In this document: in pieces, positions 25,201 through 56,554 of the stretch
Layout of the letters: each line of letters opens with the position of its first letter
Numbering within the stretch: position 1 is the stretch's first letter
NCBI GenBank assembly: GCA_965112735.1
Contig: OZ218951.1
Span: 496,001-560,000 of the forward strand
Direction: 5' to 3'
Source of the DNA: Phaeosaccion multiseriatum
Taxonomy: Eukaryota; Protista; Ochrophyta, other classes
DNA: 64,000 bases
The notes under the pieces: generated by a model
Seen by the model: only the letters and a program-made list of their open reading frames with translations
Databases searched by the model: none
What the model was told of the DNA's origin: nothing
Program-made: the position numbers and the translations under genes

Positions 25201-28200
25201 CCAGGCAACCGAAGAGCAGCACGCATGGAGCAACCACAGAGCGTTGGAAGCTATCGGAAGCGCGGCGACAGCAAGTGGCGTAGAGGTGCACATGGTGGAG
25301 GCAGTCGGTTCCGACGCGCAGCCACGTGGGGCCCATCTCTTCTACTTGGCGTCAGCAGGGACGTGCTCTCCTACCGATGGGGCAATCCAGTTTGTGCAAA
25401 CTGTACAGAGCTTAGGCGGGGACGAGGCAGTGATGCCGATCACCGTGGTGACAACGGGTGTGTACAGCGGTGCTGGTTGGCAGGACAGCTGGGCAGTGGG
25501 ACTGGTGAGAAGCGTACGCCTGGAGCGGGGCGACCTCTCCGTGAACCACGTGGACCTTGAGTGCGCCATGTCTCCACAGTCTGAGGGTGCTCAACCTACA
25601 GTAGAGGAGATGGAAGTTCAAACTATCTCCCAGGCTGTGACGCTGGCTGCCGGAGCCTGCGGCGGAGGTCGAGGTGTGGACCTGCTGGTTCGAGGGTGTG
25701 AGATCCTCGCTCCGAGGCTGATGCCCAGCACACTCCATCTGACATCGGCAGGAGTCGATCGCCTCACGTGCAGGGAGGATGGGACCTACCTGATCAGCGG
25801 TGGCCTGGGGGGACTGGGTCTGGCGACCGCGAATCACTTGGTGTCCCAGGGCGCTCGATACCTGCTCCTCCTTTCTCGAAGCGGCCGGGCGGCAGAGGAA
25901 GTTTCAGAGCTGTGGCAGGCCCTGCAGAGTATGGAGAGTGTCACCGCTGTGGCCGTGGCCTGCGATGTCTCTGAGATGCATCAGCTTCGAGACGCTGTAG
26001 CCAACGCTTTGGTGGACCTGCCTACCGTTCGGGGTGTGATTCACGCAGCAGGGGTTCTAGATGACCGTAAGTTGGCGGGGCAGACCGACCAGAGCATGCG
26101 GAAAGTGTTCGCACCAAAGATTCACGGGGCTTGGAATCTGCATGAGCTGTCGCTTGAGTGGGCCGAGAGGGAAGAGAACTTGGACTTCTTCGCATCGTAT
26201 TCATCTACTTCTGGGATACTTGGTAACATCGGACAGACGAATTATGCCGCAGCCAACTCCGCGCTCGATGGTCTGATGCGCTACCGCCGCCAGCAGCTCA
26301 GGCTGGCGGGCACCAGCATTCAGTGGGGGCCCTTTGGTGAGGCGGGCATGGCAGCGAAGTCTACGACACTGCGGAGCCTTTTCGAGATGGCCGGAGTGGG
26401 CCTGATCTCATCGGCGCTGGGTATGAAGGCACTGGATGCCGTCCTTGCAAGTCAAGCGCAAGCCAACGTGCAGGAGGTGGCCGTCATGCCGGCCATGAGG
26501 TGGGGCAAATTTCGAGCGAGCTTGGCCCCTGTGCACAGCGATTTCCTCGGGCAATTGACAGACCGCGGAGAAAATGGCGAGGCATCAAAGGGCTACAGCG
26601 TCAACGCCGAGGTGCGGGAGGAGCTCCTGCTCTTACCGGAGTCAGCACGGCGGGAGAGGATCGAGCAGGTCCTGACGGACATGGTGGTGGAGTGCGTTGG
26701 CGAGGACTTCACCTTGGCAGCAACGATGCCCTTGATGGAAGCCGGACTCGATTCGATGGCGTCCGTAGAGTTTCGCAAGCGAATCGAGGCCTGGTGTGGT
26801 GTCACCGTTTCGAATGGCGCCTTCTTCTCGTCTCCATCAGTGTCTGCAATGGCCGCGTGGCTCGAGGCCCGGATTCTTGAGGTGCGGGATGATGTAGAGG
26901 GGGGTAAAGAGGTGCTGACAAGACAGCACTTGTCCTCGGACTCTCGAGCCCCCATCGCTGTAGTGAGTATGGCGTGTCGCCTCCCCGGTGGAGCCAATAG
27001 CCCGGAGCAGTTCTGGTCGATGATGTGCGAGGGCAGAGACTGCATTACGGCAGCGCCACCCGACAGGTGGGAGAGTAAGACGGGCGAGCTGCAGCTACAG
27101 GGAGGGTTCATCGAGGACGTGGAGATGTTCGACAATGCCTTCTTTGGCATCAGTGCTGCCGAGGCAGAGGCAATGGACCCCAATCAGCGCCTCATGCTGG
27201 AGGTGGCCTTCGAGGCCCTCCATCGCGCGGGCCACAGCAAGAGCAGCCTGCGGGGCAGCAACACCGGCGTGTTCGTGGGCTTGTCGGACACGGACTGGGG
27301 CTTCGTGGCAGGAGATGCCGCTGCTCAGAGTGCCTATGGCGGAATGGGCCTGACGGCTTCGAACATTGCGAATCGCGTATCCTACACTCTGGGTCTCTGC
27401 GGCCCCAGTGCGTTGCTGCAGACAGCATGCTCGTCGTCCCTGGTGGCTCTGGACGCTGCTTGCAGCAACCTCCGCCTGGGCAAGTGCGACTCGGCGGTGG
27501 TCGGTGGCGTGAACCTGCTGCTCGGGAAGAGCACCTTCCAGTCCTTGATTGCGGGGACCTTCCTCTCCCCCGACTGGTAAGTTGCTCTGGACACTCTGGT
27601 CTGTGAAGTCTGATTCATTTATCCTATTGCTGCTCTTGGGCGTCTTCTCTACAGTCAAACAAGACCTTCCGTTGCACCCCACTCACACCCCACCTATATT
27701 TCTCTACCTTGCGACAGGCGCTGCAAGACGTTTGACGCATCTGCAAATGGTTATGTCAGAGGCGAAGGATGTGGTGCCATTGTGCTGAAGCGCTTTGATG
27801 ATGCTATGGCCAGCGGGGACGCTGTGCTAGCGGTAATCGAGGGCTGTGCGGTCAACCACAATGGGGCCAGCGCTCGTCTGACGGCACCCAGTCCTCTTGC
27901 TCAGCAGCAGCTTCTGTCTGCCGCTCTGGCAGAGGCGGGAAGGGACCCCGCAGAGGTGAGCTTCGTGGAGGCGCACGGCACGGGAACGGCGCTGGGAGAC
28001 CCCATCGAGATGAGCGCCCTTAAGGCAGTGTACTGCGGACCGGACCGCAGCGAGGCAAATGCCTTGGTGGTAGGTGCGCTGAAGGCCAATATCGGCCATC
28101 TGGAGGGTGCAGCAGGTATTGCAGGCCTCATCAAGACCGTACTGGTGCTGCAGCACCGCATCGCCCCTCCGAACCTGCATTTGAAGGACATCAACCCCGA

Positions 28201-31200
28201 GCTGGAGCTCGCCGGCGTCCCTGTGACGCTGCCTGTGACCATGGAGCCCGTGGGTCAGGGCGGGCGGACAGGAGTGCTCGTTGCTGCCGTGAGCTCTTTC
28301 GGTGCCGGCGGAACCAATGCTCACGCCGTGCTATCCGGTCCCAGAGCTGGGAGTACGGCCGCGCATACCGACGGAGAGGGCGTCGGCTTCAACGATGCTC
28401 TTCAGAAGGACAGCGAGTCAGAGCGTGGCGCATTGTACCGCACACGCCAAGCGTTTCGTTGGTTCAGGCCTCCACTGGCATTCATGCCCAGCGGCGAGGT
28501 GGTCCAAGAGGGAGACGGAATGCGGCTCTCTTGCCCCTTCTCGCCTCACATCAAGGACCTTCTCAAGGACCACGCAGTCAACAATGTGGTGATCATTCCA
28601 GGGGTGACGTACATTGAAGTGGGTGTTGTCACTGCTCTAGAAGCAAGACAGCTCGGGGTGGAGCAGCAAGTCGTCCTGCAAGGAGCCAACTTTGTGGCTC
28701 CATTGGAGATTGAGGGTTTCCAGCACACGGGCACGGACAAAGCGCAGAGCCGCAATACTATTGTCTGTGACGGCTTGAGTGCTCTACACGCGAGCGATGG
28801 AAGCATGCAGTTTTTCGGAGGCGTTGAGGGTGACAAGGGAGCGACCGCGAGGATGGAACACGTGTCTGTCATGGAGCGAACCGAGCCGCGTGACATGCTG
28901 GATATAGAGGGAATCAAGGGGCGGGTAGGGACTGTGGACTTGGCCCATGGCCTGTACAAGGCCATGGCGGATGCCAACTTCAACTATGGCCCTCGCTTTG
29001 AGCGGAGTTTACAGATGTTCGCCAATGACGGAGAGGTGCTATCGGTCGTGCGTGCTCTCGACTCGGACCTGTGCGAGCCTTGGGAGGCGACGGGCTTTGC
29101 TCTGCACCCTGCGGTGCTCGACAATGCGACTCACTCACTTTTGCACGCAATCCCACGCCAGTTGTTGAGAGCGAGGGATGGAGCTCCATTCCTGCCCGTT
29201 GGCTTTGACGAGGTGATCGTTTCTGCCCCCATATCGGGAGCAAAGGTATGGGTGCACACGACGCTCGGTGAAGTGGAGCCCGGGGGCAACTGCGTCAAGT
29301 TTGACATCAAGATTGCCGACTTTGATAGCAAGCAGATTCTTTTGGAGATGCGTGGGTTCCGGGCTCAGCGGGCGAGAGGCTTTGTGCGCTCCAATCCGCT
29401 TCGTCGGGCGATGTACACGCTTAAATGGCAGACCACTGAGTCGTCTACACAGGAGGAGGCCCCTGGTAGTGATACTGACCCTGCTGAGGCGGCGGTGCCA
29501 CAGAAGTGGCTGGTGGTTATTCCACAGGACGAGAGGGAGGAAGAGATTTCAATCATTGCTGCAGTGCGGCACTGTGTTCCGGAGAACGTGCACATACACA
29601 CTCGATATGGGGGGATGGACGCCTCCTGGGATGATGGTGCTCTTCTTTTTGGAGAGGACGAGTGGGCTCGCGTCTTGTACGTGCCGATCTCTGGGGATGG
29701 CAAAGAAGACGCAGAAGGAAGCCCGCAAGCACGAGCGGCCTACGCTCTGCTATCGCTACTCAGGAGCATGTCCACTACGTCGAATGTGCCGCTGACGGTC
29801 TTGACGAGGGGCGTCCAAAGCGGCGAGGACTGGCGTGACAGCTGGGTGACTGGGCTGGTGCGGACTGCGAGAGTGGAGCACCCCTCCCTGCAGATTGGCG
29901 TGGTGGACCTCAGCGGCAAGAAGGACCAAGACAGCGAGCTTGCCTTAGGCTTGGCCTTCCCTACTGCCATAGAAGATGTGTGGGTACGCGACGGACAGTG
30001 CTGGGCTCCTCGGCTTGTACGTCAGCCCCTGCAGCTTCCCTTCTCAATAGATTTGAAGGCAAGAGGCAGCATTGCCGACGCTTTCGCCCTTCGCGATGAT
30101 GTGAACCATGGCAAACACCAGCCCCTTGACCCAGCTGGCAGCTCCGTACAGGTGGCAGTGAGGGCAGTTGGTCTTAACTTCCGAGACGTGCTGAATGTGC
30201 TGGACATGTACCCTGGCGACCCTGGAGATCCTTGCTCCGAGTTCGCCGGAGAGGTGATCAGTGTGGGAGGAAGCTCGCGCTTCAGTGTCGGCGATGCAGT
30301 GTTTGGCTTTGGCGATGCGGGATGTTTGCGCAGTCATGTGACGACGAGTGATGTGTGTCTGGCCGTGATGCCGGCCGTGCTGCGCTTCGAGCAGGCCGCT
30401 GCACTTCCCATCGTGTGCTTGACGGTAGTGAAGGCCTTCCACGACCTCAAGGCTGGAGAGAAGGTGTTGATTCACGCCGCATCGGGCGGTGTGGGTCTTG
30501 CCGCCGTGCAGTATGCTCAGCGGGTGGGCGCAGAGGTGTACGCTACTGCCGGTGCTGCTGTGAAGCATGACTTCCTCCGGAGCTTGGGAGTGGAGCACAT
30601 TGCGTCATCGAGAGACGCAGAGGCGTTCAAGCAGTCCATGGGTGAGGTGAAGGTGGATGTGGTGCTCAACTCACTGAGCAGGGACTACATTCCCTTCTCG
30701 CTGGCCATGCTAAGCGAGGGCGGTAGATTCGTGGAGATTGGGAAGAGAGGTGTATGGAGTCACGAGCAGATGCGCACCGCCCGGTCCGATGTGAGGTACA
30801 ACCTCGTCGCTGTGGACGCCATTGTCGAGTCCGACTTTTCGGCGGGTGAGCCGGGCTGGATAAGCGACGAGCTGCAGCATCTGGCTGAAGACTGCATGTC
30901 TGGCAATGTGAAGCCGTTACCGACCATACCATTTGACATGAGGGAGGATACCCAGAAGGCCATGGCACTCATGAGCCAAGCAAAGCACATCGGCAAGGTG
31001 GTGCTGACCAACCCCTCGTACGGTGTGCCAGTCGTGTCCGATGGCACGTACGTCATCAGCGGCGGTCTGGGCGCTCTCGGCCTCGTGACGGCCCAGCACC
31101 TCGTGTCGAGGGGCGCTCGTCACCTTGTGCTGCTGTCGAGGAGTGGGAAGGTCGCCGAAAGCATGACAGAGCAGTGGCAGCAGCTTCAGAACAAGGTGGA

Positions 31201-34200
31201 GCTGACAATCCATACTCCTACTTGCGATGTTGCTGACGCGGAGGCACTTCGGACTTGCCTGGGGGGCGTGCTGCCTCTGCTCCCCCCTGTACGCGGTGTG
31301 GTGCATGCTGCCGGGGTGCTGGATGATATGCTGCTGGGAGAGCAGACGGCGGAGAGCGTGATGAACGTCTTCCGACCGAAGGTGCAGGGGGCGATTAACT
31401 TGCACGAGCTTTCGTTGGCTTGGGCGACGGAGGAGGGGCGCGCTCCTGGCCTTGACTTCTTCTTTTGCTTCACATCCATGGCCGGAGTACTGGGTAACGC
31501 TGGACAGGCCAACTACGCTGCAGCGAATGCGGCTGTGGACGGGCTGATGCGGCACAGGCGACAGCTCGGGCTCACAGGGACGTCATTGCAGTGGGGGCCG
31601 TGGGCTGACGTTGGTATGGCTGCCCAGCTCGACATTGTTCAAAAACAGTTAGAGCTTGCGGGTGTGGGCACGGTGTCAGCAGAGCTCGGTATGGCTGCCT
31701 TAGATGCCGCTGCGATGCCGTCAGCGTACTTGGGCGATGTTGCCGTTCTGCCTGGGATGGACTGGGGCAAGTTTGCAGACAGCTTGGGTGCGTCCCGCGG
31801 CTCGTTCCTTCTGTCAGGGCTTGTCTCAACAGCAGCGGGCGCGTCGAGCAACACCGAAATCAACAATGAAGTGCGCGAGGCGCTCTTGAGACTGCCGCCT
31901 GGCGAGCGACTGCAATCAGTGCGATTGGCGGTGCTTGATATCGCCAAGGACCTACTTGGAGAGGGTTCCGAAGAGCTGGACGCGAACACGCCTTTGATGG
32001 AAGCAGGTCTTGACTCTTTGTCAACGGTGGAGCTGCGCGGCCGGCTACAGGCTCGCTTCGGGGTTGTAGTGACCACTGACGTGCTCTTCGCGTATCCCAC
32101 GGTAGCGGCGCTGGCAGTGTGGATCGAAGCGGAGGTGCTTGGCGAGGTAGAGGAACCCTCTAGCAGTCGCTCTGCGGCGATTGCTGCTGAAGCGCACCAC
32201 ACTGACTCAAGGGCGCCGCTGGCCGTCGTCGGGATAGCCTGTCGCTTCCCTGGAGGGGTTCAGAACCCCGAGGACTTCTGGGCTATGCTCTGTGCAGGGA
32301 CAGACTGTATTGGAGCCAGCCCACTTGGACGCTGGGCCGAGGAAGGTCAGAAGCAGTGGCAAGGGGGCTTCATTGATGGAGTGGAGGCTTTTGACAACAC
32401 CTTCTTCGGTATCTCTGCGGCCGAGGCGGGTGCCATGGACCCTCATCAGCGCGTCATGCTGGAGGTGGGGTACGAGGCTCTGCACAGGGCGGGATACCGC
32501 AAGGATACACTACATGGCAGCAACACGGGTGTGTTCGTGGGTATGTCCGGCAGCGAGTGGGGCTCAGTAGTAGACGATGCGAACAAGGGTGCGTACTCCG
32601 TCATGGGCATGTCCAATGCGAGTCCGGCAAATCGGATGTCTTACGTGCTGGGCCTCGGAGGGCCGAGCATGAGTGTCGACACGGCGTGCTCGTCGTCTTT
32701 GGTGGCACTGGAAGGGGCCTGCAGCAGCTTGCGACTGGGCAAGTGTGACATCGCCTTGGTGGGAGGCGTCAACTTGCTGCTGGGTACACAGTCGTTTGAG
32801 ACCCTCGCCGAAGGAGGTTTCCTGAGTCTTGACTGGTAAGTGCGTGTCTCTTCTGTGTGGGTGGGAGCTTGTTCTTGGGGCTGCTATGAGAGCCATATCA
32901 AAAGGCCCAAGCTGTCTGAAAGGCCCCTATTGCTGCTGATGGATTTCCTCTTGTCTGCTCTTCACTTTTGCAAACCCTCAATGGTCAGGCGCTGCAAGAC
33001 GTTCGACGCTGCGGCCAACGGTTACGTTCGAGGTGAGGGCTGCGGCGCCGTGGTACTGAAGCGACTGGACGATGCACAGGCCAATGGCGACCACATCCTC
33101 GCAGTCGTCAATGGCTGCGCTGCGAACCACAACGGGAGAAGTTTGCGCTACACTGCCCCGAGCCCTTCTGCTCAGCAGCGTCTGATGGAGCAGGCACTGG
33201 CGGAGGCCGGCTTGAGCGGTGTGGAGGTTGATTACGTGGAGGCGCACGGCACCGGGACTTCTCTCGGCGACCCCATCGAGATGAGTGCTTTGAGGGCCGT
33301 GTATGGCCATGGCCGTGAGGAAGCTCGGCCCCTGGTGGTTGGGGCGGTGAAGACCAACATCGGGCATCTAGAGGGTGCGTCCGGAGTCGCTGGCCTCATC
33401 AAAGCTCTGCTGGTCCTTCAGCACGGATCTGCTCCCCCCAATCTCCACATGAGGAAGCTCAACCCGGAGCTTCGTTTGGATGGCTTTCCGGTGACTTTGC
33501 CGTCTGCCATGGTGCCACTAAGTGCCAGGGATGGGGAGAGGCGTACTGCTGGTGTCAGCTCCTTCGGTGCGGGAGGAGCCAACGCCCATGTGGTGCTCAG
33601 CAGCTTCGGACCGACTCTAGTAGAGGAGAGCGAGAGCGGAGCCTTGCTGCAGCTTGATGTGCAGCAAAGCAAGAAGAGATCGCCGGTGACGTTCTTGTTC
33701 ACTGGACAGGGCTCGCAGTACGTGGGCATGGGCAGAGAGCTGTACGAGAAGGAGGGCGTGTTCCGCGAGTGCGTGCAGCGGTGCAGTACGCTGCTCATGG
33801 AGCGGGCTTGGCTGGACAAGTCTGTGGTGGAGCTCATGTACCCTGCCGCCGCTGAGGACGGGGAGGAGGATGAGGAGGAGGAGGAGACTGCACCAGCGCT
33901 GCTGAAGGAGACGCGCTACTGCCAGCCATGCCTGTTTGTGCTGGAGTACGCCCTGTGTGAGCTGTGGAGATCGGAGGGCGTGGAGCCGTCCATGGTGATG
34001 GGCCACAGCCTGGGCGAGGTAGTGGCGGCGTGCGTGGCCGGCGTCATGTCGCTGGAGGACGGGCTGATGCTGTCCGCCAAGAGAGGAGCCGCCATGCAGG
34101 CCTGCCCCGAGGGCAAGGGAGTGATGTTCGCAGTGAGGGCAGGCAAGGAGGCGACTTTGGCAAGCATCGACGCTGCGGGGGGAGCAGGCGAGGTGGTGCT

Positions 34201-37200
34201 GGCGTCGTCGAATGGACCGAGCGCGAGCGTGATCTCTGGAGCTCGCAGCGCTGTGGACAAGGTGGTGGAGAAGCTCACGGCAGATGGGGTGGGCTGCAAG
34301 GCCCTGGAGGTGTCGCACGCCTTCCACTCTCCTCTGATGGAGCCCGCTGTACTTGCGCTGGAGGAGGTTCTGAGGCAGGTGTCGTTCAGCGCCCCACGCA
34401 TTCCCCTGGTGTCCAACGTGACGGGTGAGGTGGTGAGAGCGGAGGAGGTGACGCAGGCGACGTATTGGGTGCAACACATGCTGTCGCCAGTGCTGTTCGC
34501 AGAAGGCATCCACACGGTGGTGGAGCACTGGATGGGAGACGGGAGGGGGGCTGACCTGAGCATCGTTGAGGTGGGCCCCAACCCTGTGCTGAGCAGTATG
34601 GGAGCCAAGTGCGAGCGTCGCGAGGGCCTGGCGTGGATCTCTTCTCTCACGCGCGGGAAGAGCTCTGAGGATTCGTTTCGAGTAGCTCTGAGTACAGTGC
34701 AGCAGCAAGAGAGTAAGGGCAAGGAGCACATCCTGTTCCCAACGCGCAAAGCCTTTCCTTGGTACACAGCGCGAGCCACAGCAGCACCTCAGCCGCGGAG
34801 TGAAGCTGAGCAGGGCCCGCTCTATGTTGTTGAGTGGGAGGCGGTGGGGGTGCCCACGGCTTCGCAGCAGGCTTCGCTGACCGGCAGCCTTCCGTGGCTC
34901 GTCGTGATTCCCCAGGCAGCTGAAGAGCAGCACGCTTCGAACAACCACAGAGCCTTGGAAGCTGTCCGAAGCGCGGCGACAGCAAGTGGTGTGGAGGTGC
35001 ACGTGGTGGAGGCGGTCGATTCAGACGCGCAGCCCCGTGGGGCCCATCTCTTCTACTTGACGTCAGCAACGGGCTCTGCTACCGATGGGGCAATCCACTT
35101 TGTGCAAACTGTACAGAGCTTCGACGGGGACGCGGCAGTGATACCGATCACGGTGGTGACAACGGGTGTGTACAGCGGGGCTGGTTGGCAGGACAGCTGG
35201 GCAGTGGGACTGGTGAGAAGCGTCCGCCTGGAGCGGGGCGACCTCGATATGAACCACATTGACCTTGAGTATGCCATGTATCCACATTCTGAGGATGCTC
35301 GACCTAGAGTAGAGAACATGGAAGCCCAAGCTATCTCCCAGGCTGTGACGCTGGCTGCAGGAGCCCGCGACGGCGGCCGAGGCGTGGACCTGCTGGTTCG
35401 AGAGTGTGAGATCCTCGCTCCGAGGCTGGTGCCCAGCACACTCCATCTGACATCGGCAGGAGTCGATCGCTTCACGTGCAGGGAGGATGGGACCTACCTG
35501 ATCAGCGGTGGTCTGGGGGGGCTGGGGCTGGTGACGGCGAATCACTTGGTCTCCCAGGGCGCTCGACACTTGCTCCTCCTTTCTCGTAGCGGCCGGGCGG
35601 CGGAGGAAGTTTCAGAGCTGTGGCAGGCCCTGCAGAGTATGGAGAGTGTCACCGCTGTGGCCGTGGCCTGCGATGTGTCCGACATGCATCAGCTTCGAGA
35701 TGCTGTGGCAACGGCCTTGGTGGGACTGCCTCATGTTCGGGGTGTGATCCACGCAGCGGGGGTGAATGGCGCAAAGAGAATGTTGTCGGGCGAGACGGAA
35801 GAGAACGTGCGAAATGTCTTTGCCGCCAAGGTCCAGGGAGGTTGGAACCTCCACGCGCTGTGCCTTGAGTGGGTGGCGAGCGGCAGGGAGGAGGTCGACT
35901 TCTTCGTCTCGTACTCATCGACCTCCGCTTTGCTTGGCTTGTCCAATCAAAGCGCCTATGCCGGGGCAAACGCTGCTTTGGACGGGCTGATGCGGTATCG
36001 CCGGCAGCAGCTTGGCCTTCCTGCTTCCAACGTTCAGTGGGGCCCATGGGGCGACGTGGGTATGGCGGTGCGGCTTGAGATGGCGTCGAAAGCTGCGGAG
36101 ATGGCCGGAGTGGGCCTGATCTCATCGGCGCTAGGTATGAAGGCTCTGGATGCCGTCCTTGCAAGTCAAACGCAAGCCAACGCGCAGGAGGTGGCCGTCA
36201 TGCCGGGCATGAGGTGGGGCAGATTTCGAGCGAGCTTGGACCCTGTGCACAGCGCTTTCCTCGGGCAGTTGACGGACCGCGGAGAAAGTGGTGAGGCGGC
36301 AAAGGGCTACAGCGTCAATGCCGAGGTGCGGGAGGAGCTCCTGCACTTGCCGGAGTCAGCACGGCGGGAGAGGATCGAGCAAGTCCTGACGGGTATGGCA
36401 GTCGAGTGTGTTGGAGATGACTTCACCTTGGCAGCAGAGATGCCCTTGGTGGAAGCCGGACTCGATTCGATGGCGGCCGTGGAGTTTGGCAAGCGAGTCG
36501 AGGCCTGGTGTGGTGTCACCATGTCGAGCGGCGCCTTCTTTACGTATCCATCGGTGTCTGCAATGGCTGCATGGGTCGAAGAGGAAGTGCTGGGAGCGGA
36601 CTCGGGGCCGCTGAGTGAGCTTGATGATCAAGCAACAGGTCTTTCGCACTACTCCTTGGATGCTGACGCCCCCGCGGCTTACCAGCAGGAGCACATGTAC
36701 CTTTCAGATATAGCACTGCGGACGACTGCACCTGGCGGGCAGAGCGCGTACAATCTCCCAGTGGTGCTGCCGCTGCCAGTCTCGCTGATCTCCGGACGAA
36801 CATCCGCTGAAATTGTGGACATGATAGCACAAGTGTTAGGCAGCATAGTGGAGCGACACGACGTTCTCCGGACGGTGCTTGAGTGGACAAAGCAGGGCTC
36901 TCTGAGGCAGGTTCAGCTTGGAATTACTGCAGCCGCGGTGGTGTCAGCTTGTCTCTCTTCTGCCGTGGCCAGCAGTGTTGGGGCGGCTCGGAGCCTGATC
37001 GAGGCCGATATCGCTCGTCCATTCGATTTGGAGCGGAGCCAGCCTCTATGGCGTACGTTGGTCGTACACCTCCCGCAGCAGAGCGGAGTGGAGGAGCAGT
37101 ATGCCGCGGTATCTACTTTCCATCATTGCATCTTTGATGGTGTATCCTACTTGCTCTTCCAGAGCGAGTTCAGGGCCACATGCGCAGCTGCCATGGCGGG

Positions 37201-40200
37201 GAGAGGCATTGCACAGGACCTACCGGCTCTGCCCTTCAGCTTCGCGGACTACTCCAGGTGGCAACGAGCTCGCCTGGACGGCGAAGGTCGTATTGAGGAG
37301 CTGCTCGAATATTGGCAGGGTCAACTGGCTGGTACCAGTCCACTGCAACTGCCTCTCCATCAGCGACATGCCCAAAAGGGCCTCAGTGGAGAAATGGTGC
37401 ATGAAGATATCAGTGTGGGAGGAAGTGGGAGGGTGGACTTGGTGCTACCCAATGCAGTGGTGGTCAAGTTGAGTAAACTGTGCGCGGATAGCTCCGCCAC
37501 GCTGTTTGTGGGGCTCATGGGCGCGTTCCAAGTGCTGCTGGCTCGTGTGTGCGGAGCGGAGGATGTGGTGGTGGGCACTGCGCACTTCGGAAGAGACATG
37601 GCGCAAGGCTTGGAGGGCGTGCTGGGATGCTTCGTCAACACCCTCGCGTTCCGTCTGGGCCTGGGAGGAAGGCCCAGCTTTCGGGAGGTGCTGCTTCGCG
37701 TACAGGTCGCGTATCTGGGTGCCATGAAGCATGCCGAGGCGCCATTCCACAAGGTGGTGGAGCGGGCCCAGCTGGGCAGAGATGCTCGTGGCAAGGCACT
37801 GCAGGCCTTCTTTGTACTGCAGGAGGCGGGTTTGGATACTTTGAAGAATCAGGAGGCGGGTGTGGATAGTTGGAAGAATAATACGACTGACATCGAGCTA
37901 AGCCTTGTGCGCAGCACGGACAGTGCGTCGGACATGCACGGCAGCCTGTGCTACAATACGGCGGTGCTCGACCAGGCCACAGTGGAGACCCTGGGGCGGA
38001 GCTTCCTGGCGCTGCTGGAGAGCGCAGTGGGCAGGCCGGGCCAGAACGTGTGGAAGCTGAGTCTCTTGGCACACGAGGACCGTGTGAAGGTGGTGGAGAC
38101 GTTGAGCGGCGCTGCACTGGTGGCGGGGGATGCCAATGGAGACGAGGAGGGAGGTGCAGAGGAAGCATCGCCACCACCGCCCCTCCTGCACGCGGTTTTC
38201 GAAGAGATGGCCTCTCGCAGTCCGGAGCAGGAAGCCCTGCACGAGTATGAGACGGGTCGAGTGATGAGCTACGGGGAGCTGAATGGGCATGCGAATGCGG
38301 TGGCATGCATGCTGCAGGGGAGGGGCGTGGGGCCGGAGTGCCTGGTGGGGGTGCTGATTGCTGGGGACTGCGTGGAGGCGGTTGTGGCAGTGCTGGGCGT
38401 GCTCAAGGCCGGGGCGGCGTACGTGCCCCTGGATCCCGAGCATCCCGACGATAGGCTGTCGATGATCGCACAAGACACCGGGCTGAGCGTCGTTCTGACG
38501 ACGGCAAAGGCATCAGGCGAGTCTGAGGTGCTGGCAACCGCCGATGCCAGCTTAGCGCGGCGTGTCGGAGACGTGAGCTGTGTGGACGTGGTGGCTGTGA
38601 TGCAAGTGGAGAGTACAGCGGAGCCTGTGTGCCACGCCGTGGGCGAGAACATGGCGTACGTGATTCACACGTCCGGTAGTACGGGCCGGCCAAAGGGCGT
38701 GATGATTGAGCACAGAAGCACGGCCAGCTTCATGGCGACTCTCTACGAAGAGGAACTGACCATAACGGCATCTTCGCGCGTGCTTCTGTGCAGCGCTTTG
38801 ACATTTGATGTGTCTGTGGCGTCGCTGTTTGGGGCGTTGTCGTGTGGGGCGACGCTGTGCTTGGCGGAGAAGGGCTCCATGCTGAACGACCTGCCGGAGG
38901 TGATACGGTCTTTGAGGGTAACAGACATGTACTGCACCCCGTCACTGCTGTCGCTACTTCGACCGCAAGACATCACCAATGGTGCTAAGGAGGCCACCTT
39001 ACGGTCCATCGCATTGATTGGGGAGCCGATCAAGGAAGGCCAAGTGGACATGTGGAGGCGCAGTGTTCGCCTTGTCAATAGCTACGGCCCAACAGAGGCG
39101 ACGGTTTCCGCTACCGCACATGAGTACAGTCCGGGTGCCATGTCGAGTGGGTTCGTCATCGGCAAGCCTCGAGCCGGCGTGCAGGTGTATGTGGTGGACA
39201 AGCGTCTGCAGCTGGTGCCTCAGGGCGTCGAGGGCGAGCTGTGCATTGGGGGGAGGCAGCTGGCGCGTGGGTACTTGAATCGCCCAGAGCTCACGTCGAA
39301 GGCCTTCATGCCCGCGCCCTTCCTGGCGGACCAGCGCAGGGTGTATCGTACGGTAAGTCGACAAGGTTGCCCATGGGTATGCGGCTTTGTGTGTGTGCGT
39401 GTATGGTGTGTACATTTGGCTTGCTTTTGGCCTGTCATGCGGTGAAAAGAAGAGAGCGCAGGGGGGGGGGGGTGGAGGTAGGTTTATCTGCTGCCTATGC
39501 TGTAGTAGTGTTCTGATCTGACACATCTCAAACTTAATACGTTCTGACAGGGTGACTTGGTGCGGCAGCTGGCAGACGGATCGCTGGTGTTTAGGGGTCG
39601 CCGAGACTCTCAAGTGAAGGTGCGCGGCCATCGCATTGAGCTGGGCGAGGTGGAGGCTGCGCTGCTCCATCAAGAAGGTGTGAGGAGCGCTGTGGCAGCC
39701 GTGGACAGAGAGCGCGAGACGGTTGTGGCGGCTCTGACACCTTCTAGTGCCGAAGCTGAGATGGTGCTGCAAGGAGTGAGCAAGCTGCTACCGGCATACA
39801 TGGTGCCGAGCACGGCTGTGGCCATGGATGCTCTACCAATGACGAGCAGCGGGAAGCGAGACGTGAAAGAGCTTCTTAGAGCCATTCGAGCGGCACATGA
39901 CCATGGCCCTGGCAGGCAGCGGAGCCTAGGCGTCAGCGATGACGCACCTATGGACGACACCACCCGTCAAGTGCTCGGCATTATGCGAGAGGCCATTGGG
40001 CGACCGGATCTGCGAGCCAGCGGCGACTTGTTCGCCGAGGGAGGCACTTCGCTTGACGCTGCAAGTGTCACAGCACGCATCCGCGCAGAGGTGCCAGGCT
40101 TCGAGGTGAGTGGGATAGAGGGCTGTCTTTCTGGTGTGGCCGGTAGTTCCAAATGGTTTGCTAATATAGTTGTGGACCGTCGGATATCCTTACTCGTTGC

Positions 40201-43200
40201 TGTACTCAGGCGCTCCGAGTGGCAGAGATGTTCCAGACACCCACCGCGAGGGGTGTATCTCGCTTATGTGCGAGCAGGGAGGACACGCTTCCTGGTATGA
40301 TGGTGGTATCGCGAGTTGGCGACCATCGTGAGGCTCCAGCGTCGTACCAACAGGAGCACATGCTGCTGTCGGACCTGGCGCTGCGAGCGGGCGACCCAGA
40401 CGGGAGGGCGCGATACAACGTGCCCATGCTTCTACCCGTGCCCAGCTCCGAATCGGAGAGAGAGCCCAGCGAGGTTGTGGACGGCTTGTCCCGTGCCCTG
40501 TGCGCCATGGTGGAGCGTCACGATGTTCTGCGATTGGCGCTAGGCTGGTCACCGGAGGGGACGCTGCAGCAGGTGCGGCTGCAGACCACAGCAGCGGAGG
40601 TTGTGGCGTCAGTGCTCCTGTCCGCCGAGGCGAACAGCATCGAAGAGGCCGAGAGCGTGCTATTGGCAGAGGCGGGGCGCCTGTTTGACTTGGAGGAAAG
40701 GCCACTCTGGCGCAGCACCATCGTCACCGTTGCACCACCCCAGGATGGTGAGAAGGAGCACCCGCTGGGGCGGCAAGCGGTGCTGTGTGTCTTCCACCAC
40801 TCCATCATGGATGGGTGGTCATCCAAGCTGTTCTCGCGCGAGCTGTTGGTCCTGTGGGGGGCTGTCGTGTCTGGCCGAGAGGCGACGAAGGCGCCAGCGG
40901 CTCTGCCGTTTGGGTATGCGGACTACTTCCGGTGGCAGCGGTTGCGACTGGACGGGGACAACGGCCTGGCTCTGGAGCAGCTGTTGGAGTACTGGCAGGG
41001 GCAGCTAACGGGGGCGTCTTCACTGACCCTGCCCCTGGACCGACCGCACGGTGCTTTCGGCCCGCATCTGACGGAGACTGTAGGTCAAGATGGGATTGTG
41101 GGGGGGCGCGGCGGGAGTGTCGCTGTTGTTCTGCCGGCTTCGCTGATAGTGAAGCTGAGCAAGCTATGCTCGAGCAGCTCCGTCACGCTGTTTGTGGGGC
41201 TCATGGGCGCGTTCCAAGTGCTGCTGGCTCGTGTGTGCGGAGCGGAGGATGTGGTGGTGGGCACTGCGCACTTCGGAAGGGACGTGGCGCAAGGCTTGGA
41301 GGGCGTGCTGGGATGCTTCGTCAACACCCTCGCGTTCCGTCTGGGCCTAGGAGGAAGCCCCAGCTTTCGGGAGGTGCTGCTTCGCGTACAGGTCGCGTAT
41401 CTGGGTGCCATGAAGCATGCCGAGGCACCGTTCCACAAGGTGGTGGAGCGGGCCCAACTGGGCACAAAGAGTGGTGGCAAGGCGCTACAAGCCTTCTTTG
41501 TACTGCAGGAGGGAAATGCCAGCGCCGTGGAGGAGGAGGCCCAGCTGTCAGCTGGAGCACTCCACGAGATCATGACGGAGGAGGCTGGAGAGCAGCAGGC
41601 CATTGACGTTAGCAAGACTGACATCGAGCTAAGCCTTGTGCGCAGCACGGACAGTGCATCGGACATGCACGGCAGCCTGTGCTACAATACGGCGGTGCTC
41701 GACCAGGCCACAGTGGAGACCCTGGCGCGGAGCTTCCTGGCGCTGCTGGAGAGTGCAGTGGGCAGGCCGGGCGAGAGCGTGTGGAAGCTGAGTCTCTTGG
41801 CACACGAGGACCGTGTGAAGGTGGTGGAGACGTTGAGCGGCGCTGCACTGGTGGCGGGGGATGCCAATGGAGACGAGGAGGGAGGTGCAGAGGAAGCATC
41901 GCCACCGCCGCCCCTCCTGCACGCGGCTTTCGAAGAGATGGCCTCTTGTAGTCCGGAGCAGGAAGCCCTGCACGAGTATGAGACAGGTCGAGTGATGAGC
42001 TACGGGGAGCTGAATGGGCATGCGAATACGGTGGCATGCATGCTGCAGGGGAGGGGCGTGGGGCCGGAGTGCCTGGTGGGGGTGCTGATTGCTGGGGACT
42101 GCGTGGAGGCGGTTGTGGCAGTGCTGGGCGTGCTCAAGGCCGGGGCGGCGTACGTGCCCCTGGATCCCGAGCATCCCCACGATAGGCTGTCGATGATCGC
42201 ACAAGATGCCGGGCTGAGCGTCGTTCTGACGACGGCAAAGGCAGTTGGCGAGTCTGAGGTGCTGGCAACCGCCGATGCCAGCTTAGCGCGGCGTGTCGGA
42301 GACGTGAGCTGCGTGGACGTGGTGGCTGTGATGCAAGTGGAGAGTACAGCGGAGCCTGTGTGCCACACCGTGGGCGAGAACATGGCGTACGTGATCTACA
42401 CGTCCGGTAGCACAGGCCGGCCAAAGGGCGTGATGATTGAGCACAGAAGCACGGCCTGCTTCATGGCGACTCTCTACGAATTCGAACTGACAGTGACAGC
42501 ATCTTCGCGCGTGCTTCTGAGCAGCGCTTTGACTTTCGATGTGTCTATGGCGTTGCTGTTCGGGACGTTGTCGTGTGGGGCGAAGCTGTGTTTGGCGGAG
42601 AAGGGCTCCCTGCTGAACGACCTGCCGGAGCTGATACGGTATTTCGGGGTGACGGAAGCTGAATTCACCCCCTCACTGTTGTCACTGCTGAAACCGGGAG
42701 ACATTATGGAGGAGGGCACCTTACGGTCGATCGCTTTGGGTGGGGAGACAGTGAAGCAGGATCAAGTGGACATGTGGAGGCACCATGTGCGCCTCGTTAA
42801 TAGCTACGGTCCAACAGAGGCGACGGTTTCCGCGACCGCACATGAGTACTCCTCTGGGGCCCTGTCGTGCGCATCTGTCATCGGCAAGCCTCTGACTGGC
42901 GTGCAAGTGTATGTGGTGGACAAGCGTCTGCAGCTGGTGCCTCAGGGCGTGGAGGGCGAGCTGTGCATTGGGGGGAGACAGCTGGCGCGGGGTTACTTGA
43001 ATCGCCCAGAGCTCACGTCGAAGGCCTTCATCCCCGCGCCCTTCCTGGCGGACCAGCGCAGAGTGTATCGTACGGTAAGTCGAAAAGGTTGCCCATGGGT
43101 GTGCGGCTTTGTGTGTGTGCGTGTATTGTGTGTACATTTGGCTTGCTTTTGGCATGTCATGCAGTGACAAGCAGAGCGCAGGGGGGGGTGGAGGTAGGTT

Positions 43201-46200
43201 TATCTGCTGCCTATGGTGTAGTGTTCTGACGCGTCTCAAACTGAACACGTTCGGACAGGGTGACTTGGTGCGGCAGCTGGGAGACGGATCGCTGGTGTTT
43301 AGCGGTCGCCGAGACTCTCAAGTGAAGGTGCGCGGCTATCGCATTGAGTTGGGCGAGGTGGAGGCTGCGCTGCTCCATCAAGAGGGGGTGGTGAGCGCTG
43401 TGGCAGCGGTGGACAGAGAGCGCGAGATGATTGTGGCAGCTCTGACACCTTCTAGTGCCGAAGTTGAGATGGTGCTGCAAGGAGTGAGCAGGCTGCTACC
43501 GTCATACATGGTGCCGAGCACGGCTGTGGCCGTGGATGCTCTACCGATGACGAGCAGTGGGAAGAGAGACGTGAAAGAGGTGCTGAGGATGATCAAGGCG
43601 GAAGCGAAGGGAAACAAAACCGCTGTAAAGGCGTCCGACGGCGACGAGGCGTTAGGCGACACTGCCCGCCAAGTGCTGGGCATCCTGAGGCAGGCCACGG
43701 AGCAGCCTCACTTGCAGGCCAATGACGACTTGTTCGCAGAGGGAGGCACATCGTTGAGTGCAGCTCAGGCGGTTTCGCGTATTCGGGCAGAGGTTCCCGG
43801 CTTCGAGGTGAGTGACTTTGAGCACAAAGCTTTCGTCGTGTTGTGTCTCGCCCTTGTTGCTGACCCTGTTGTGTCTGTGTGACTCCTGCAGGCTCTGACA
43901 GTAATGCAGATCTTCCAGAACCGAACCGCTGTGGCACTTTCAGTGCTTGGTGCCGCGGAGGAGGGCGGAGGTCGAGGAGACAGCGGGCAAGAGTCGTCGG
44001 CAGCAAGCGAAGCCCGACTGAAGGACGAGGAGCGCGATTTTGAGTCAGTCGGTGAAGAAGGGGAAGCGATGAAGGCGCACAGGAGGCTCAGCACTGGCAA
44101 GCAAGTGGTGCTGCAGGTTCTGACTTGGCTGCTCGTCGTTGCTGTGCTCAGCTGCGGGTTTTCTCCCAGCTTCGTTGGCGTGTACTTGCTACGTAGAGCA
44201 GGGCGCGGCAATACGACGATTCTTTCTTGGCTACCACTCCTCGTCGTCGTGTCAGTAGGCTGGGTCCTTGCCCTGATTGTAGTGGTGAAGTGGACTATGC
44301 TTGGCCGCATGCGACCGGGGCGATGGTCCGTGAGGAGCTGGTACTACTGGCGGTGGTATGCTGTGCAGAATGTGCTGAAACTTGCCGCACTGCTGATTTC
44401 TGTTCTCCGTGGTACCTTCGCCTTGCGGGTGTGGAACCGCCTGCTGGGGGCACGAATCAGTGGAAGCGCGCGCTTAGAGAGCTGGCTGCTGCACGAGCAT
44501 GACTTGATCGAGATTGGAGAAGGGGCCGTGATCGAGTACGGAGCCGTCATTCGCCCGTCTGTCATTACTCGAAATGGCATGCTCCATGTCCATCGCGTGA
44601 GGATCGGGAAGGGAGCAAAGGTGGGCATACTGTCCAACGTGTGTCCGTCTCCATGGGAGGGGGGGCAGACGCAGGAGCGGGGGGAGGGCCTGAAGAAGGA
44701 GCCGAAGGAGCCGAAGGACTTGGTCATCGGCGAGGGGACGGAGCTCGGTCCGTACGCGTCGCTCGGCCATTCGTCACTCTCTGGCCCGCTGGCAGAGGTC
44801 GAGCGCGAGGAGGGGCTGCGGCGGACAGGAAAAGAGCTTTTTGCCTTGGCCCTGCTTTCAGTGACCAACTTGGGGTCGTACGTGCTGCCCCTCTGGATAC
44901 TCGTGCTTGCCGGCGGGGGTGATGACGACGGCGCGGGGGAGAGTGTCCCCATCTTCGCTCGTGCATTGGCGTTCCCCGTGCTTCTGTTGATCGGAAGCAT
45001 GCTGTACATGGTGGCAGTGCTATCGATCCAGCGTGTATTTTTGCTGCTCGGCCCCAGCGCCACCACACGGCTGTCACTCGGAGTTCTTCAGGAGAGTCCT
45101 CTCTTCACGGTTGGCTCCCTTCTTGTGGCAAAATGTGGGCTCAACCGTGTTGTTGCTTCCGCCATGGGCGCCAGGCTGGAGCGGGGGTGCGCACTTTCTA
45201 CCCTTCCTATCACTACGATATGGGAGAAGCTCAGGATAGGGGAAAACTCCCAGCTCGCGGGCTCTGTGCACCTTTTCGCTGATGGGGGTGGTCGTGGAGA
45301 CGAGGATACGCAAAGCATCACAATCGGCCGCTTCAGTATTGTTGCGAACGAAGCTCTTCTCATGGGCGGAGCTTGCATTGGGGACGGAAGCACGGTCGCA
45401 GATCGCACCGTTGTGAGAAGAGACGATGACGTACCGTGCAACTCTTCTGTAGTGGGCGCCCCTCGGCCGTTTGTATTGCCGAACCCAGTGAGTGCTGCTG
45501 GTGAGAAGGATGGCGTCGATGCAGCAGGCAGTCTTCCTGTTCCGTCGAGGATGCACAATGCGCTCCGTGGGCTTGCGACTGTGGTACTGCTCCTCGGCGT
45601 ATGGTGTCCGGGGGTGCTGATCAGCGCGTCGGTATCTGACCTGCTGTTGCGCAATGGCCATGTGCATGGGGCTGCCGCCTTCTGTCCCTTCGTCCTTCCA
45701 GAAGTGGTGGCGAAGGATACTCTGAGCGAGAGCCATACTGGAGTGTTCTTCCTTGTGTTGGGGAGCTTCGTCTTTCAAGTTCTCATGGCCTTGGCGGGCG
45801 CTTGCTCAGCCATTCATTTCCATCGAGTTCTGGGCACATCCTTGCATGCCAAAGAGGGGCAGCCTCCCATAGCGCTCGATTCGCCTTCGCTGGATATATA
45901 CCACTTGGGCAGCATGGCCCCTGCCTTCATTGAGGCTCTCTGCATCAAGTACTTCGCGGGCGGGCCGGTGTACGCGGCGTGGCTGCGGCTGCTGGGGGCA
46001 AGTGTTGGCAAGGACACATCTTTATGGCTCAGGCCTTATGATGTGCATCTTCTCGTCATTGGAGACGAAGCGGTGGTGTTGCAAGACTCCACAATCTTCG
46101 CGCACACCATCGAAGGCACGGGAGGGTTCGTCTTCAAGACTGTGCAAGTCGGGGAGAACGCGTGGCTCGGAGCAAGGGCTCACTTGCAGCCTGGATGCCG

Positions 46201-46537
46201 CGTTGAAGCAGGAGCTAACGTTGGTGACCTGAGCATGGCCATGAGAGGTGAAAGTGTCACCAATTCAAAGCGTGGAGACGTGGTGTGGGTGGGCATACCG
46301 CTGAGAAAGTACTTCTTGTCCTCCCGAGCGCTCACTGCGCCGCGTCACGGAACGGAGCTGGACAGCGGCAGAGCCCCGGCAGAAGAGCGAACCCTTCGCA
46401 ACAAGGGCAGAGGGGGGTCGAGGAGACATGTGGTTCGAGAGGGAAACAGCCCTCGCCGAGGAGGAGCGTCTTTCCGGTGGAAGAGTGTGCATCAGCCTGA
46501 GGAGACGAAGAATACGGATAGATTCGATGTAGTTTGA
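1..46537 (+). CDS. Giant hybrid modular type I PKS-NRPS (5'-partial, >=14,764 aa; 8 KS, 4 AT, 4 DH, 4 ER, 7 KR, 8 ACP, 2 C-A-PCP, Pls-like terminal domain)
   Basis: The ORFs join in frame through GT-AG introns. Exons: 1-322, 831-1953, 2115-2892, 3038-8319, 8432-13477, 13639-17907, 18049-23166, 23317-27576, 27718-32835, 32989-39352, 39551-40105, 40210-43074, 43259-43807, 43892-46537 (total 44,295 nt, divisible by 3; TGA at 46535-46537). The junctions restore split conserved motifs ([10 protein letters not shown][W/G]RCK[T/A]FD, ELYDE|RAVFREC, YRT|GDL, PGFE|AL). Confidence 0.9.
361..706 (+). repeat. (TCAC)n microsatellite in PKS intron 323-830
   Basis: Tandem TCAC with CCAA interruptions. Confidence 0.97.
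1331..7630 (+). other. PKS module 1: KS-AT(malonyl)-DH-ER-KR-ACP
   Basis: KS DTLCSSS/HGTGT/KTNIGH; AT FTGQGSQ, GHSLG, HAFHS; [13 protein letters not shown] and HPAVLD; ER LNFRD and HAASDGVG; [17 protein letters not shown]; ACP GLDSMS. Confidence 0.9.
5495..12320 (+). repeat. Internal duplication: ER-KR block about 5495-7160 repeated at about 10653-12320 (offset 5158)
   Basis: Near-identical DNA; the ORF track shows matching shadow ORFs at a constant offset of 5158 (e.g. 5500/10658, 6616/11774). Confidence 0.95.
7690..12780 (+). other. PKS module 2: KS-DH-ER-KR-ACP (AT-less)
   Basis: KS DTACSSS/HGTGT/KTNIGH; only about 40 aa separate the KS end (NAHVLL) from the DH region, with no GQGSQ or GHSxG; [10 protein letters not shown]; KR LDD/YAAAN; ACP GLDSMS. 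Confidence 0.9.
12846..17215 (+). other. PKS module 3: KS-AT(malonyl)-KR-ACP
   Basis: KS DTACSSS; AT FTGQGSQ, GHSLGQ, HAFHS; no DH or ER motifs; [17 protein letters not shown]; ACP GLDSMAS. Confidence 0.9.
17278..22470 (+). other. PKS module 4: KS-DH-ER-KR-ACP (AT-less)
   Basis: KS QTACSSS/HGTGT/KANIGH; no AT motifs; [13 protein letters not shown] and HPAVLD; ER LNFRD and HAASGGVG; KR LDD/YAAAN; ACP GLDSLS. Confidence 0.9.
22545..26885 (+). other. PKS module 5: KS-AT(malonyl)-KR-ACP
   Basis: KS DTACSSS; AT GHSLG/HAFHS; KR LDD/YAAAN; ACP GLDSMAS; paralogous to module 3. Confidence 0.9.
26947..32140 (+). other. PKS module 6: KS-DH-ER-KR-ACP (AT-less)
   Basis: Near-identical copy of module 4 at an offset of 9669 nt, with the same motif set. 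Confidence 0.9.
32214..36595 (+). other. PKS module 7: KS-AT(malonyl)-KR(non-LDD)-ACP
   Basis: KS DTACSSS; AT GHSLG/HAFHS; [20 protein letters not shown] (no LDD), QSAYAGAN; ACP GLDSMAA. Confidence 0.9.
36665..40270 (+). other. NRPS module 1: C-A-PCP
   Basis: C domain HHCIFDG (codon start 37121); A-domain cores [49 protein letters not shown]|[28 protein letters not shown]; PCP GGTSL. Confidence 0.92.
37490..43570 (+). repeat. Duplicated NRPS module (offset about 3.7 kb), including the intron at YRT|GD
   Basis: Shadow ORFs 37898/41629 and 38269/42000 lie at offset 3731, and introns 39353-39550 and 43075-43258 are clearly homologous. Confidence 0.93.
40330..43950 (+). other. NRPS module 2: C-A-PCP
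   Basis: C domain HHSIMDG (codon start 40795); full set of A-domain core motifs; PCP GGTSL; paralogous to NRPS module 1. Confidence 0.92.
44080..46320 (+). other. Membrane-bound NRPS terminal domain of the epsilon-poly-L-lysine synthetase (Pls)/TIGR02353 type: three repeats of TM hairpin plus hexapeptide-repeat segment
   Basis: Hydrophobic segments alternate with the motifs [101 protein letters not shown]. Recognised by eye, not by HMM. Confidence 0.8.
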
Positions 46538-46756
46538 TCCCTCTAGTACGATACGGACGATTGAAGAATGGGGCGATGATGTATTCTTGGCTGGTCCCGG
46601 ACCCATGATGTGATCCATGATCCACATGAATTTTTTCATGCTCCGCCTCCCCCAATCATACAACAGTATTCACAGAAAAAAAATTACCTATTACTAGTAC
46701 TACGGAGTATGTTTTATCTTCAATTATCGATGAAAAGCTCTCTGATATATGGGCAA

Positions 46757-55663: not shown

Positions 55664-55727
<64 letters not shown>

Positions 55728-56514
55728 GGACAGACGGACAGACAGAGAGAAAGGGCCCAGAAGCTGGAAATACAAGTCCAATGACGGGAGACTTACCGCC
55801 TGCGTCTTGGCCCAGAGGTCCGCCCCCCCGCAGCTGGCGAGAAGCAGCGCGTCTGCCATGTTTCCTGTCTGCAGGCAGCACTGCACCGCCGCCTCAAAGT
55901 TCCCCACAAGCAGCGCCCGCTTGATGAGGGTTTCTGCACCCACATCCATGGTCACGGGAGGGTGTGCCAACAGACCGTGTTGCGTGGCGGCAGCGAACAT
56001 GCCTTCCAAGCCCCCCCCTTCCCCTCCTGCCGCTGTTGAGGCGCCTCCTTCCGCTCCCCCAGCCGCCCCGCTGGCCGTCGCTCCGTCTGCGGGAGGAGCG
56101 CTGCCGAAGTCCACGCCCGGAGGAGGAGGGGAAGCACCACCAGCAGCAGCAGCGGCGGCAGCGGCGGAGGGAGAGACGGGTGGCAGGGGGATGTTCTCTG
56201 TCGGTGGAAGTCCAAAGTCTCCCCCTCCCGCGCTGGCCCCTCCCGGCCCTGCTGGGCTGAAGAGGGAGGATGTCCCTGCCCCATCAGCGCCGTCTGTAGA
56301 GCGTCGGACGAGTCAGACGATGGGCCGGGGGGGGGGAGAGGGGAGAGAAATGGTGAGGAATGGGGAAAGGTGGGGAGAGGAGAGGGGTGAGCAAATGGGC
56401 AGTAGAAAAGGCAGGGCATGCACAAAGACGCACAACCGAACACTTGTTACTCACCACCCCGACAAGGTCGGACACTGGGGACGCAACATGGCGTGAGCAA
56501 CAGCCCAATACACC

Positions 56515-56554
<40 letters not shown>

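Follow-up and report, generated by a model that had tools for sequence, protein, structure and literature searches.

How does an assembly line release its product when its last carrier domain is followed by neither a thioesterase nor a reductase? The question is raised by a hybrid polyketide synthase-nonribosomal peptide synthetase (PKS-NRPS) of the alga Phaeosaccion multiseriatum, encoded in a stretch of 64,000 nucleotides (nt) (contig OZ218951.1 of assembly GCA_965112735.1, positions 496,001 to 560,000 of the forward strand), hereafter called the window, in whose coordinates positions are given. On the + strand lies a single, very long megasynthase gene interrupted by introns. The window starts inside one of its ketosynthase (KS) domains, the 5' end of the gene falling outside the window, and the last exon (43892-46537) encodes a predicted membrane domain related to the C-terminal domain (Cterm) of the poly-amino acid synthetases Pls and PosA. 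Chain release sets the final product of an assembly line, and for this step thioesterases, reductases and terminal condensation-type domains are known. As the first-pass annotation had claimed, neither a thioesterase (an alpha/beta-hydrolase with a GxSxG motif) nor an NAD(P)-binding reductase was detected in 43892-46534 with Pfam and NCBIfam. Domain scans of the larger open reading frames (ORFs) in the 17 kb downstream revealed no thioesterase, reductase or phosphopantetheinyl transferase gene.

The exon starts at 43892, directly after an AG acceptor (43890-43891), and closes with a stop codon at 46535-46537, exactly as first annotated. Its product of 881 amino acids (aa, numbered here from the exon start) is organised as follows.

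43892..44092, + strand: C-terminal helices of the second and last peptidyl carrier protein domain (PCP2), then an acidic, glycine-rich linker (hydropathy, homologue alignments)
44093..44287, + strand: transmembrane (TM) hairpin 1, aa 68-90 and 107-132 (hydropathy; long helices in the AlphaFold2 model)
44318..44791, + strand: soluble repeat C1, in which a beta-strand and two core helices lead into a left-handed beta-helix, with the LGARISG motif at aa 185 (TIGR02353, AlphaFold2)
44813..45049, + strand: TM hairpin 2, aa 308-340 and 354-386, with an acidic loop (hydropathy, AlphaFold2, composition)
45059..45496, + strand: soluble repeat C2, core helices and beta-helix, with the MGARLERG motif at aa 425 (hexapeptide acetyltransferase matches, AlphaFold2)
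45548..45841, + strand: TM hairpin 3, aa 553-586 and 616-650 (hydropathy, AlphaFold2)
45884..46315, + strand: soluble repeat C3, core helices and beta-helix, with the LGASVGK motif at aa 701 and His738 (Pfam Hexapep, conservation)
46328..46537, + strand: disordered tail of about 70 aa, rich in arginine and glycine, and stop codon (predicted local distance difference test (pLDDT) below 50; composition)

This is the layout of the Pls/PosA proteins: six TM helices in three pairs and three related soluble segments, each some 150-180 aa long (PMC10522769). The alternation of TM segments with three hexapeptide-rich repeats, first noticed in the letters, is borne out by hydropathy and by the AlphaFold2 model, in which the beta-helices span about aa 143-300, 390-535 and 665-808, and the GA[R/S][I/L/V] motif does occur three times. 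In a family alignment of 85 sequences, no columns other than those of its glycines (aa 186, 426 and 702) are invariant. Only C3 of the three repeats has a conserved histidine (aa 738 in FAHTIEG, nt 46103-46105), found in 98% of 84 homologues. The domain retains 34 of the 63 columns conserved at 80% or more, this histidine included.

Of the NCBIfam models, that of the Pls/PosA terminal domain, TIGR02353, matches best (E 1.2e-38, 132.9 bits, in three stretches; the next family reaches E 2e-08), a similarity far beyond chance. Its best stretch covers aa 70-248 of the ORF 43904-46534, equivalent to exon aa 74-252. C2 is matched by hexapeptide acetyltransferases, at about ORF aa 430-523 (exon aa 434-527) in NCBIfam and at exon aa 447-561 in a sequence search of the PDB. 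The sole Pfam match in the exon, Hexapep (PF00132; 54.8 bits against a 27-bit cutoff), lies in C3 (ORF aa 747-774, exon aa 751-778). The predicted fold is that of the left-handed beta-helix (hexapeptide) acyltransferase superfamily, in which LpxA, LpxD and the hexapeptide acetyltransferases use an acyl thioester donor and a histidine as general base and form trimeric assemblies. A reading of the exon product as an ordinary soluble acetyltransferase was considered and rejected.

The AlphaFold2 model, built on the family alignment, has a mean pLDDT of 79.4 and a predicted template modelling score of 0.84; confidence is low in two of the C1 loops, around TM5-TM6 and in the tail. Each beta-helix is preceded by a strand and two to three core helices, as in the model of PosA (PMC10522769). 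When the model was compared by Foldseek with the AlphaFold Swiss-Prot set, the top match was the delta-poly-L-ornithine synthetase PosA (residues 618-1329 against query 11-753, 815 aligned columns, E 1.8e-25, TM-score 0.64 by query), both structures being predicted. All other Swiss-Prot fold matches were single beta-helix acyltransferases; the fold matches in Swiss-Prot and the PDB include LpxA, maltose O-acetyltransferase and WcaF. Matches over the whole domain, with TM-scores of 0.66-0.69, also came from cluster representatives of the AlphaFold database annotated as 'Carrier domain-containing protein' or 'AMP-binding protein'. In the PDB, a sequence search returned no Pls/PosA terminal-domain structure and only weak hexapeptide acetyltransferase matches (E at least 0.013), and Foldseek found no whole-domain match: LpxA, GlmU, maltose acetyltransferase and proteins like them aligned with single repeats only. 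Both likenesses on which the first-pass annotation had staked its proposal, that to TIGR02353 and that to a Pls-type structure, were thus present.

Because the number of TM passes between repeats is even, the segment after TM2 is basic (six Lys/Arg, no Asp/Glu) and the TM3-4 loop is acidic, all three soluble repeats are expected on the PCP side of the membrane. On this reading, the three beta-helix repeats on their three TM hairpins would fold as one compact domain on the carrier-domain side.

An assignment of this domain to the megasynthase depends on the splice that joins it to the last carrier. The two NRPS modules upstream and the introns concerned are as follows.

36737..40270, + strand: NRPS module 1, condensation-adenylation-PCP (C-A-PCP; Pfam scans and motifs)
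40106..40209, + strand: intron in the first PCP (PCP1), GTGAGT..CAG, phase 0, right after ..AEVPGFE and at the same position as the PCP2 intron
40210..43807, + strand: NRPS module 2, the last, C-A-PCP (Pfam and NCBIfam scans and motifs)
43808..43891, + strand: intron in PCP2, 84 nt, GT-AG, phase 0 (from the sequence)

The serine motif and first helices of PCP2 lie in the upstream exon and its last helices in the exon from 43892, across the junction ..GGC TTC GAG / GTGAGT .. CTCCTGCAG / GCT CTG ACA GTA ATG... As read from the sequence, the last exon is joined to the final PCP of the megasynthase, and 80 homologue domain alignments of the spliced sequence span the junction with at least 20 aa on each side. 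An in-frame ATG four codons past the acceptor opens an ORF (43904-46537) that could be taken for a separate gene, or for an unspliced remnant, outside the megasynthase; contigs from four public sequencing runs over 42300-47300 behave as DNA-type, one of them colinear through the intron 43808-43891, and contain no splice joints. Such a reading is highly improbable, since the exon opens with the closing helices of a PCP that has its serine motif in the preceding exon, and since the unspliced upstream frame ends at 43880-43882 and leaves a truncated PCP. The PCP1 intron, at the identical codon, provides an internal control: the exon 3' of it runs on into C2-A2, so splicing at this position is obligatory. 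On these three grounds the separate-gene reading was rejected.

The modules feeding the terminal domain carry intact core motifs, HHxxxDG in both C domains and GGTSL in both PCPs. Module 1 has HHCIFDG (nt 37121) and introns 39353-39550 and 40106-40209; module 2 has HHSIMDG (nt 40795) and an A-domain intron at 43075-43258. With the C2-A2 exon as query, only bacterial NRPSs were matched, at about 30-36% identity.

How far this ending is shared can be judged from its relatives. Searched exhaustively with phmmer, 1.84 billion representatives yielded 1,217 matches (best E 6e-39), none above about 33% identity, so that the searched library holds no close relative. Most are A-T-Cterm proteins (T, carrier domain) of about 1,300 aa; DAESIGTVV (lysine type) and DMEHNGTV(T/S) (the ornithine type of PosA) are the prevailing codes of their A domains. 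The domain also occurs in other architectures, in which ACP is acyl carrier protein and AT, DH, ER and KR are the acyltransferase, dehydratase, enoylreductase and ketoreductase domains of PKS modules.

Stygiella incarcerata EP01028_P005930 (P0110): KS-AT-KR-ACP-KS-ER-KR-ACP-Cterm, 4,380 aa, with the domain directly after a PKS ACP
Chrysoparadoxa australica CAM9397790.1 (P0045): ..ER-KR-ACP-C-A-Cterm, a PCP between A and Cterm not being scored separately
P0120, from a Joint Genome Institute metagenome, eukaryote-like contig: fatty acyl-AMP ligase-ACP-KS-AT-KR-Cterm
Phalansterium: C-A-PCP-Cterm
Plant proteins: amine oxidase-A-PCP-Cterm plus a catalase-like insert
A metagenome protein: two amine oxidases followed by three PCPs and Cterm
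Bacterial contig L002, 3952-9444: cyclic nucleotide monophosphate-binding domain-A-PCP-Cterm-FMN-dependent dehydrogenase, in one 1,830-aa protein

The proteins that combine a flavin amine oxidase with A, PCP and the Pls-type membrane domain are an observation in their own right: they measure 2,100-2,500 aa and come from Eucalyptus (the P0165 cluster, the form with the catalase-like insert), Marchantia (P0199) and a metagenome (P0049). No literature was found on such plant or eukaryote amine oxidase-A-PCP-Pls-type proteins. A word-index search with the P0110 terminal region retrieved only P0110 itself and a Marchantia protein, the index being too insensitive at such divergence.

In a quick IQ-TREE tree the window domain groups with P0045, the Chrysoparadoxa PKS-NRPS, and the amine-oxidase protein P0049 (Shimodaira-Hasegawa-like approximate likelihood ratio test 94). 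This group lies inside a 19-member clade (96) of unusual, mostly eukaryotic architectures, apart from about 70 bacterial A-T-Cterm sequences. All branches of the clade are long, that of the window reaching 2.39 changes per column, and long-branch attraction may have contributed to the grouping.

Calibration of TIGR02353 gives the same picture: three bacterial A-T-Cterm proteins score 602-831 bits, the fused or eukaryotic members 170-233 and the window domain 133; P0085, a relative with a PosA-type A-domain code, passes at 643 bits. TIGR02353 is an NCBIfam equivalog_domain model with a curated cutoff of 423.1 bits. Judged by its sequence, the terminal domain is a divergent but genuine Pls/PosA-type homologue, not an equivalog. 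The first-pass identification with Pls is retained as homology, by profile (E 1.2e-38) and by fold, and does not extend to equivalence: the cutoff is missed, near-invariant residues differ, and the tree places the domain with fusion proteins.

What would such a domain do at the end of a PKS-NRPS? In Pls and PosA it joins a carrier-bound aminoacyl thioester to the side-chain amine of a free acceptor as an amide (PMC10522769 and its reference 5). By analogy, the domain described here probably releases the finished polyketide-dipeptidyl chain at the membrane by handing it to a bound amine (a hydroxyl being the less likely acceptor), with the C3 histidine as the presumed base. Standing in for a thioesterase or reductase as the chain-release catalyst, it would bind the PCP-tethered polyketide-dipeptidyl thioester, as Pls/PosA, LpxA and LpxD bind their thioesters, and pass the acyl group to a non-covalently bound nucleophile. 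This would most likely be an amine (that of a free basic amino acid, of a polyamine or of a side chain in a second product molecule) rather than an alcohol. The conserved C3 histidine may serve as general base, release would take place at the membrane, and the helices may aid export or insertion of the product. Homology and layout, the predicted fold, the continuity of the exons and the intact core motifs of the C, A and PCP domains are documented here; catalytic activity, acceptor type and membrane coupling we infer. General acyl transfer from a carrier is favoured over amino-acid homopolymerisation by sister proteins such as that of Stygiella (P0110), in which the domain directly follows an ACP; in the PKS-fused relatives P0110 and P0120 amino acid homopolymerisation is not possible, which indicates a general carrier acyl transfer.

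The adenylation pockets bear on the amine. The two C-A-PCP modules are 74% identical, and the A domains are near-duplicates (38198-39352 and 41929-43074), with codes, read from core motifs and the family alignment, of DVAYAISVS(K) in module 1 and DVAEAGSVS(K) in module 2. The nine-residue codes differ only at 278 (Tyr vs Glu) and 301 (Ile vs Gly), which looks like a pocket switch after module duplication. Glu278 in A2, which resembles ornithine-type codes, suggests a basic amino acid substrate, which would supply an amine.

The same residue could be read in favour of a different activity, in which A2, PCP2 and the terminal domain form a built-in Pls/PosA unit that iteratively makes an isopeptide oligomer or polymer of a basic amino acid, with the polyketide-peptide chain as its cap or point of attachment, and so yields a lipo-polycation. 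The protein ends in the A-PCP-Cterm order of the polymerases, the fold match to the PosA polymerisation domain runs over its full length, and A2 differs from A1 at two of nine pocket positions, the modules being 74% identical. We nevertheless consider it unlikely. A conserved Glu at code position 3 (Glu221 in PosA, with Asp217 at position 1), which binds the side-chain amine together with the Asp, is reported for all cationic homopolyamino acid (CHPA) synthetases (PMC10522769). Position 3 is Asp or Glu in 89 of 96 relatives, the polymerase A domains keeping Glu, whereas A2 has the position 1 Asp but Ala at position 3, its acidic residue being at position 4 instead. Neither the single-module A-T-Cterm arrangement nor the Asp1/Glu3 pocket of the CHPA synthetases (Pls, PosA, PDAP/PDAB synthetases) is found here. 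Moreover, an upstream condensation domain would normally acylate the alpha-amine in every cycle, in sister fusions the domain directly follows an ACP, and the window domain clusters with non-polymerase architectures, under the equivalog cutoff.

Several observations weigh against release by acyl transfer to an amine. The TIGR02353 score of 132.9 bits misses the curated cutoff, which the bacterial A-T-Cterm proteins pass at 602-831 bits and from which the window domain is far removed. Near-invariant residues are changed (W340L, R369S, G376E, K589F, T637G and D665H, in model numbering), most of which are kept in the Stygiella and Chrysoparadoxa fusions. No experimental assignment of catalytic residues in Pls/PosA terminal domains was found in the literature, and no product is known for any protein of the fusion clade. 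The DNA-type contigs at the last splice belong to the same side of the account.

These changes raise the question whether the domain is catalytically degenerate and kept as a membrane anchor or targeting device, release being left to hydrolysis, spontaneous cyclisation or an enzyme encoded elsewhere. Acidic and basic residues are among those substituted (D665H, R369S, K589F), the TIGR02353 score is the lowest among the fused relatives tested, and the terminal branch, at 2.39 changes per column, is very long. Yet confidence in the predicted fold is high for each of the three repeats, neither the C3 histidine nor any of the invariant glycines is lost, and endings of this type recur in other organisms, so that degeneration appears quite improbable. 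Sequence variation in the sample gives a further indication. The summed contig depth of the four public runs over 42300-46500 is 10-50 times that of the single-copy flank 46650-47300, with many variant positions, which suggests that the sample contains many near-identical (at least 95% similar) paralogues or alleles of the NRPS/terminal-domain part. The variants listed in the terminal exon include 12 synonymous and 19 non-synonymous ones, more synonymous ones than expected under neutrality; in so incomplete a sample this is a weak hint of constraint.

We therefore retain release by transfer to a bound amine as the preferred function. Whether the divergent Pls/PosA branch acts more widely as a general assembly-line terminator, here and in scattered protists, is a more tentative matter. 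It might couple release from PKS, NRPS and hybrid lines to the membrane, either by ligation to an amine or lipid acceptor or by extrusion of a lipo-polycation or polymer, with a chemistry and a product class not yet described; we regard this wider role as possible but doubtful. The novelty lies in a known domain family found in an undescribed architecture and proposed role. If active, the domain would add a further release mode beside thioesterases, reductases and terminal condensation-type domains, and would tie a megasynthase of soluble type to the membrane; amide-linked lipopeptide conjugates or lipo-polycations would then be expected in algae. The Pls/PosA family would be widened from single-module polymerases to a modular terminator in several eukaryotic lineages, offering a second, non-polymerising context in which to study a structurally unsolved domain.

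The remainder of the window provides the setting of the gene.

1..36736, + strand: PKS part of the megasynthase (Pfam scans of long + strand ORFs), its 5' end outside the window
46757-47323, - strand: convergent gene about 220 nt past the megasynthase stop codon, a CDP-diacylglycerol synthase exon (PF01148, E 2.7e-22)
53579-58762, - strand: exons matching WW, Sec16/Sec23-binding and WD40 domains, which would fit a Sec31-like COPII coat gene

The PKS part reads, by Pfam, ..KS-ACP-KS-AT-DH-ER-KR-ACP-KS-DH-ER-KR-ACP-KS-AT-KR-ACP-KS-DH-ER-KR-ACP-KS-AT-KR-ACP-KS-DH-ER-KR-ACP-KS-AT-KR-ACP, so that at least eight PKS modules and the two C-A-PCP modules precede the terminal domain. Within 1-36700, AT-bearing modules (KS-AT-KR-ACP) alternate regularly with AT-less, fully reducing ones (KS-DH-ER-KR-ACP). 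The modules at 18113-23167 and 27782-32836 are tandem duplicates with 97.2% DNA and 96.6% protein identity over 5.05 kb, and those at 13676-17908 and 23171-27577 are tandem duplicates with about 90% DNA identity. This whole-module duplication is very recent.

Among known systems, the closest counterpart is PosA of Acinetobacter baumannii (A0A5K6CNB8), in which, as in the window protein, a carrier domain is immediately followed by three TM pairs and three beta-helix repeats (PMC10522769). PosA, however, consists of one A-T-Cterm module (about 1330 aa) and makes a homopolymer of ornithine, whereas the window domain ends a multimodular PKS with two C-A-PCP modules, shares only about 16-20% sequence identity with the PosA domain and is preceded by an A2 code without the Glu of PosA at position 3. 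Pls of Streptomyces albulus and the bacterial Pls/PosA family (for example P0029 of Streptomyces galbus) have in common with it the TIGR02353 family and the organisation into six TM helices and C1-C3; these bacterial members are A-T-Cterm only and score 602-831 bits, and the window domain falls in a separate long-branch clade. The study of PosA noted eukaryotic homologues, and its similarity network was limited to proteins of 1,100-1,800 aa (PMC10522769), a limit that would leave out megasynthase fusions. A literature search found no paper describing a PKS or multimodular NRPS ending in a Pls/PosA-type domain, and a survey of algal PKSs makes no mention of a Pls-type ending (PMC4661987). The statement in the first-pass annotation that this termination was not known from any multimodular PKS accordingly holds for the literature searched and not for the databases, where unannotated eukaryotic PKS and PKS-NRPS fusions exist. 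Of these, P0045, P0110 and P0120 end, as the window protein does, in the same type of domain after a PKS or PKS-NRPS and also score under the cutoff (170-233 bits), but they are only about 20-30% identical to it and keep several near-invariant residues that are changed in the window; no publication on any of the three was found. At the level of fold, LpxA, LpxD and the maltose and galactoside O-acetyltransferases each correspond to a single repeat; enzymes of the LpxA/LpxD type are soluble homotrimers, whereas here three non-identical repeats are set in one chain among TM hairpins. The canonical terminators, that is type I thioesterases, thioester reductases and terminal condensation-like domains, occupy the same place after the last carrier and have no relation to the window domain in sequence or fold.

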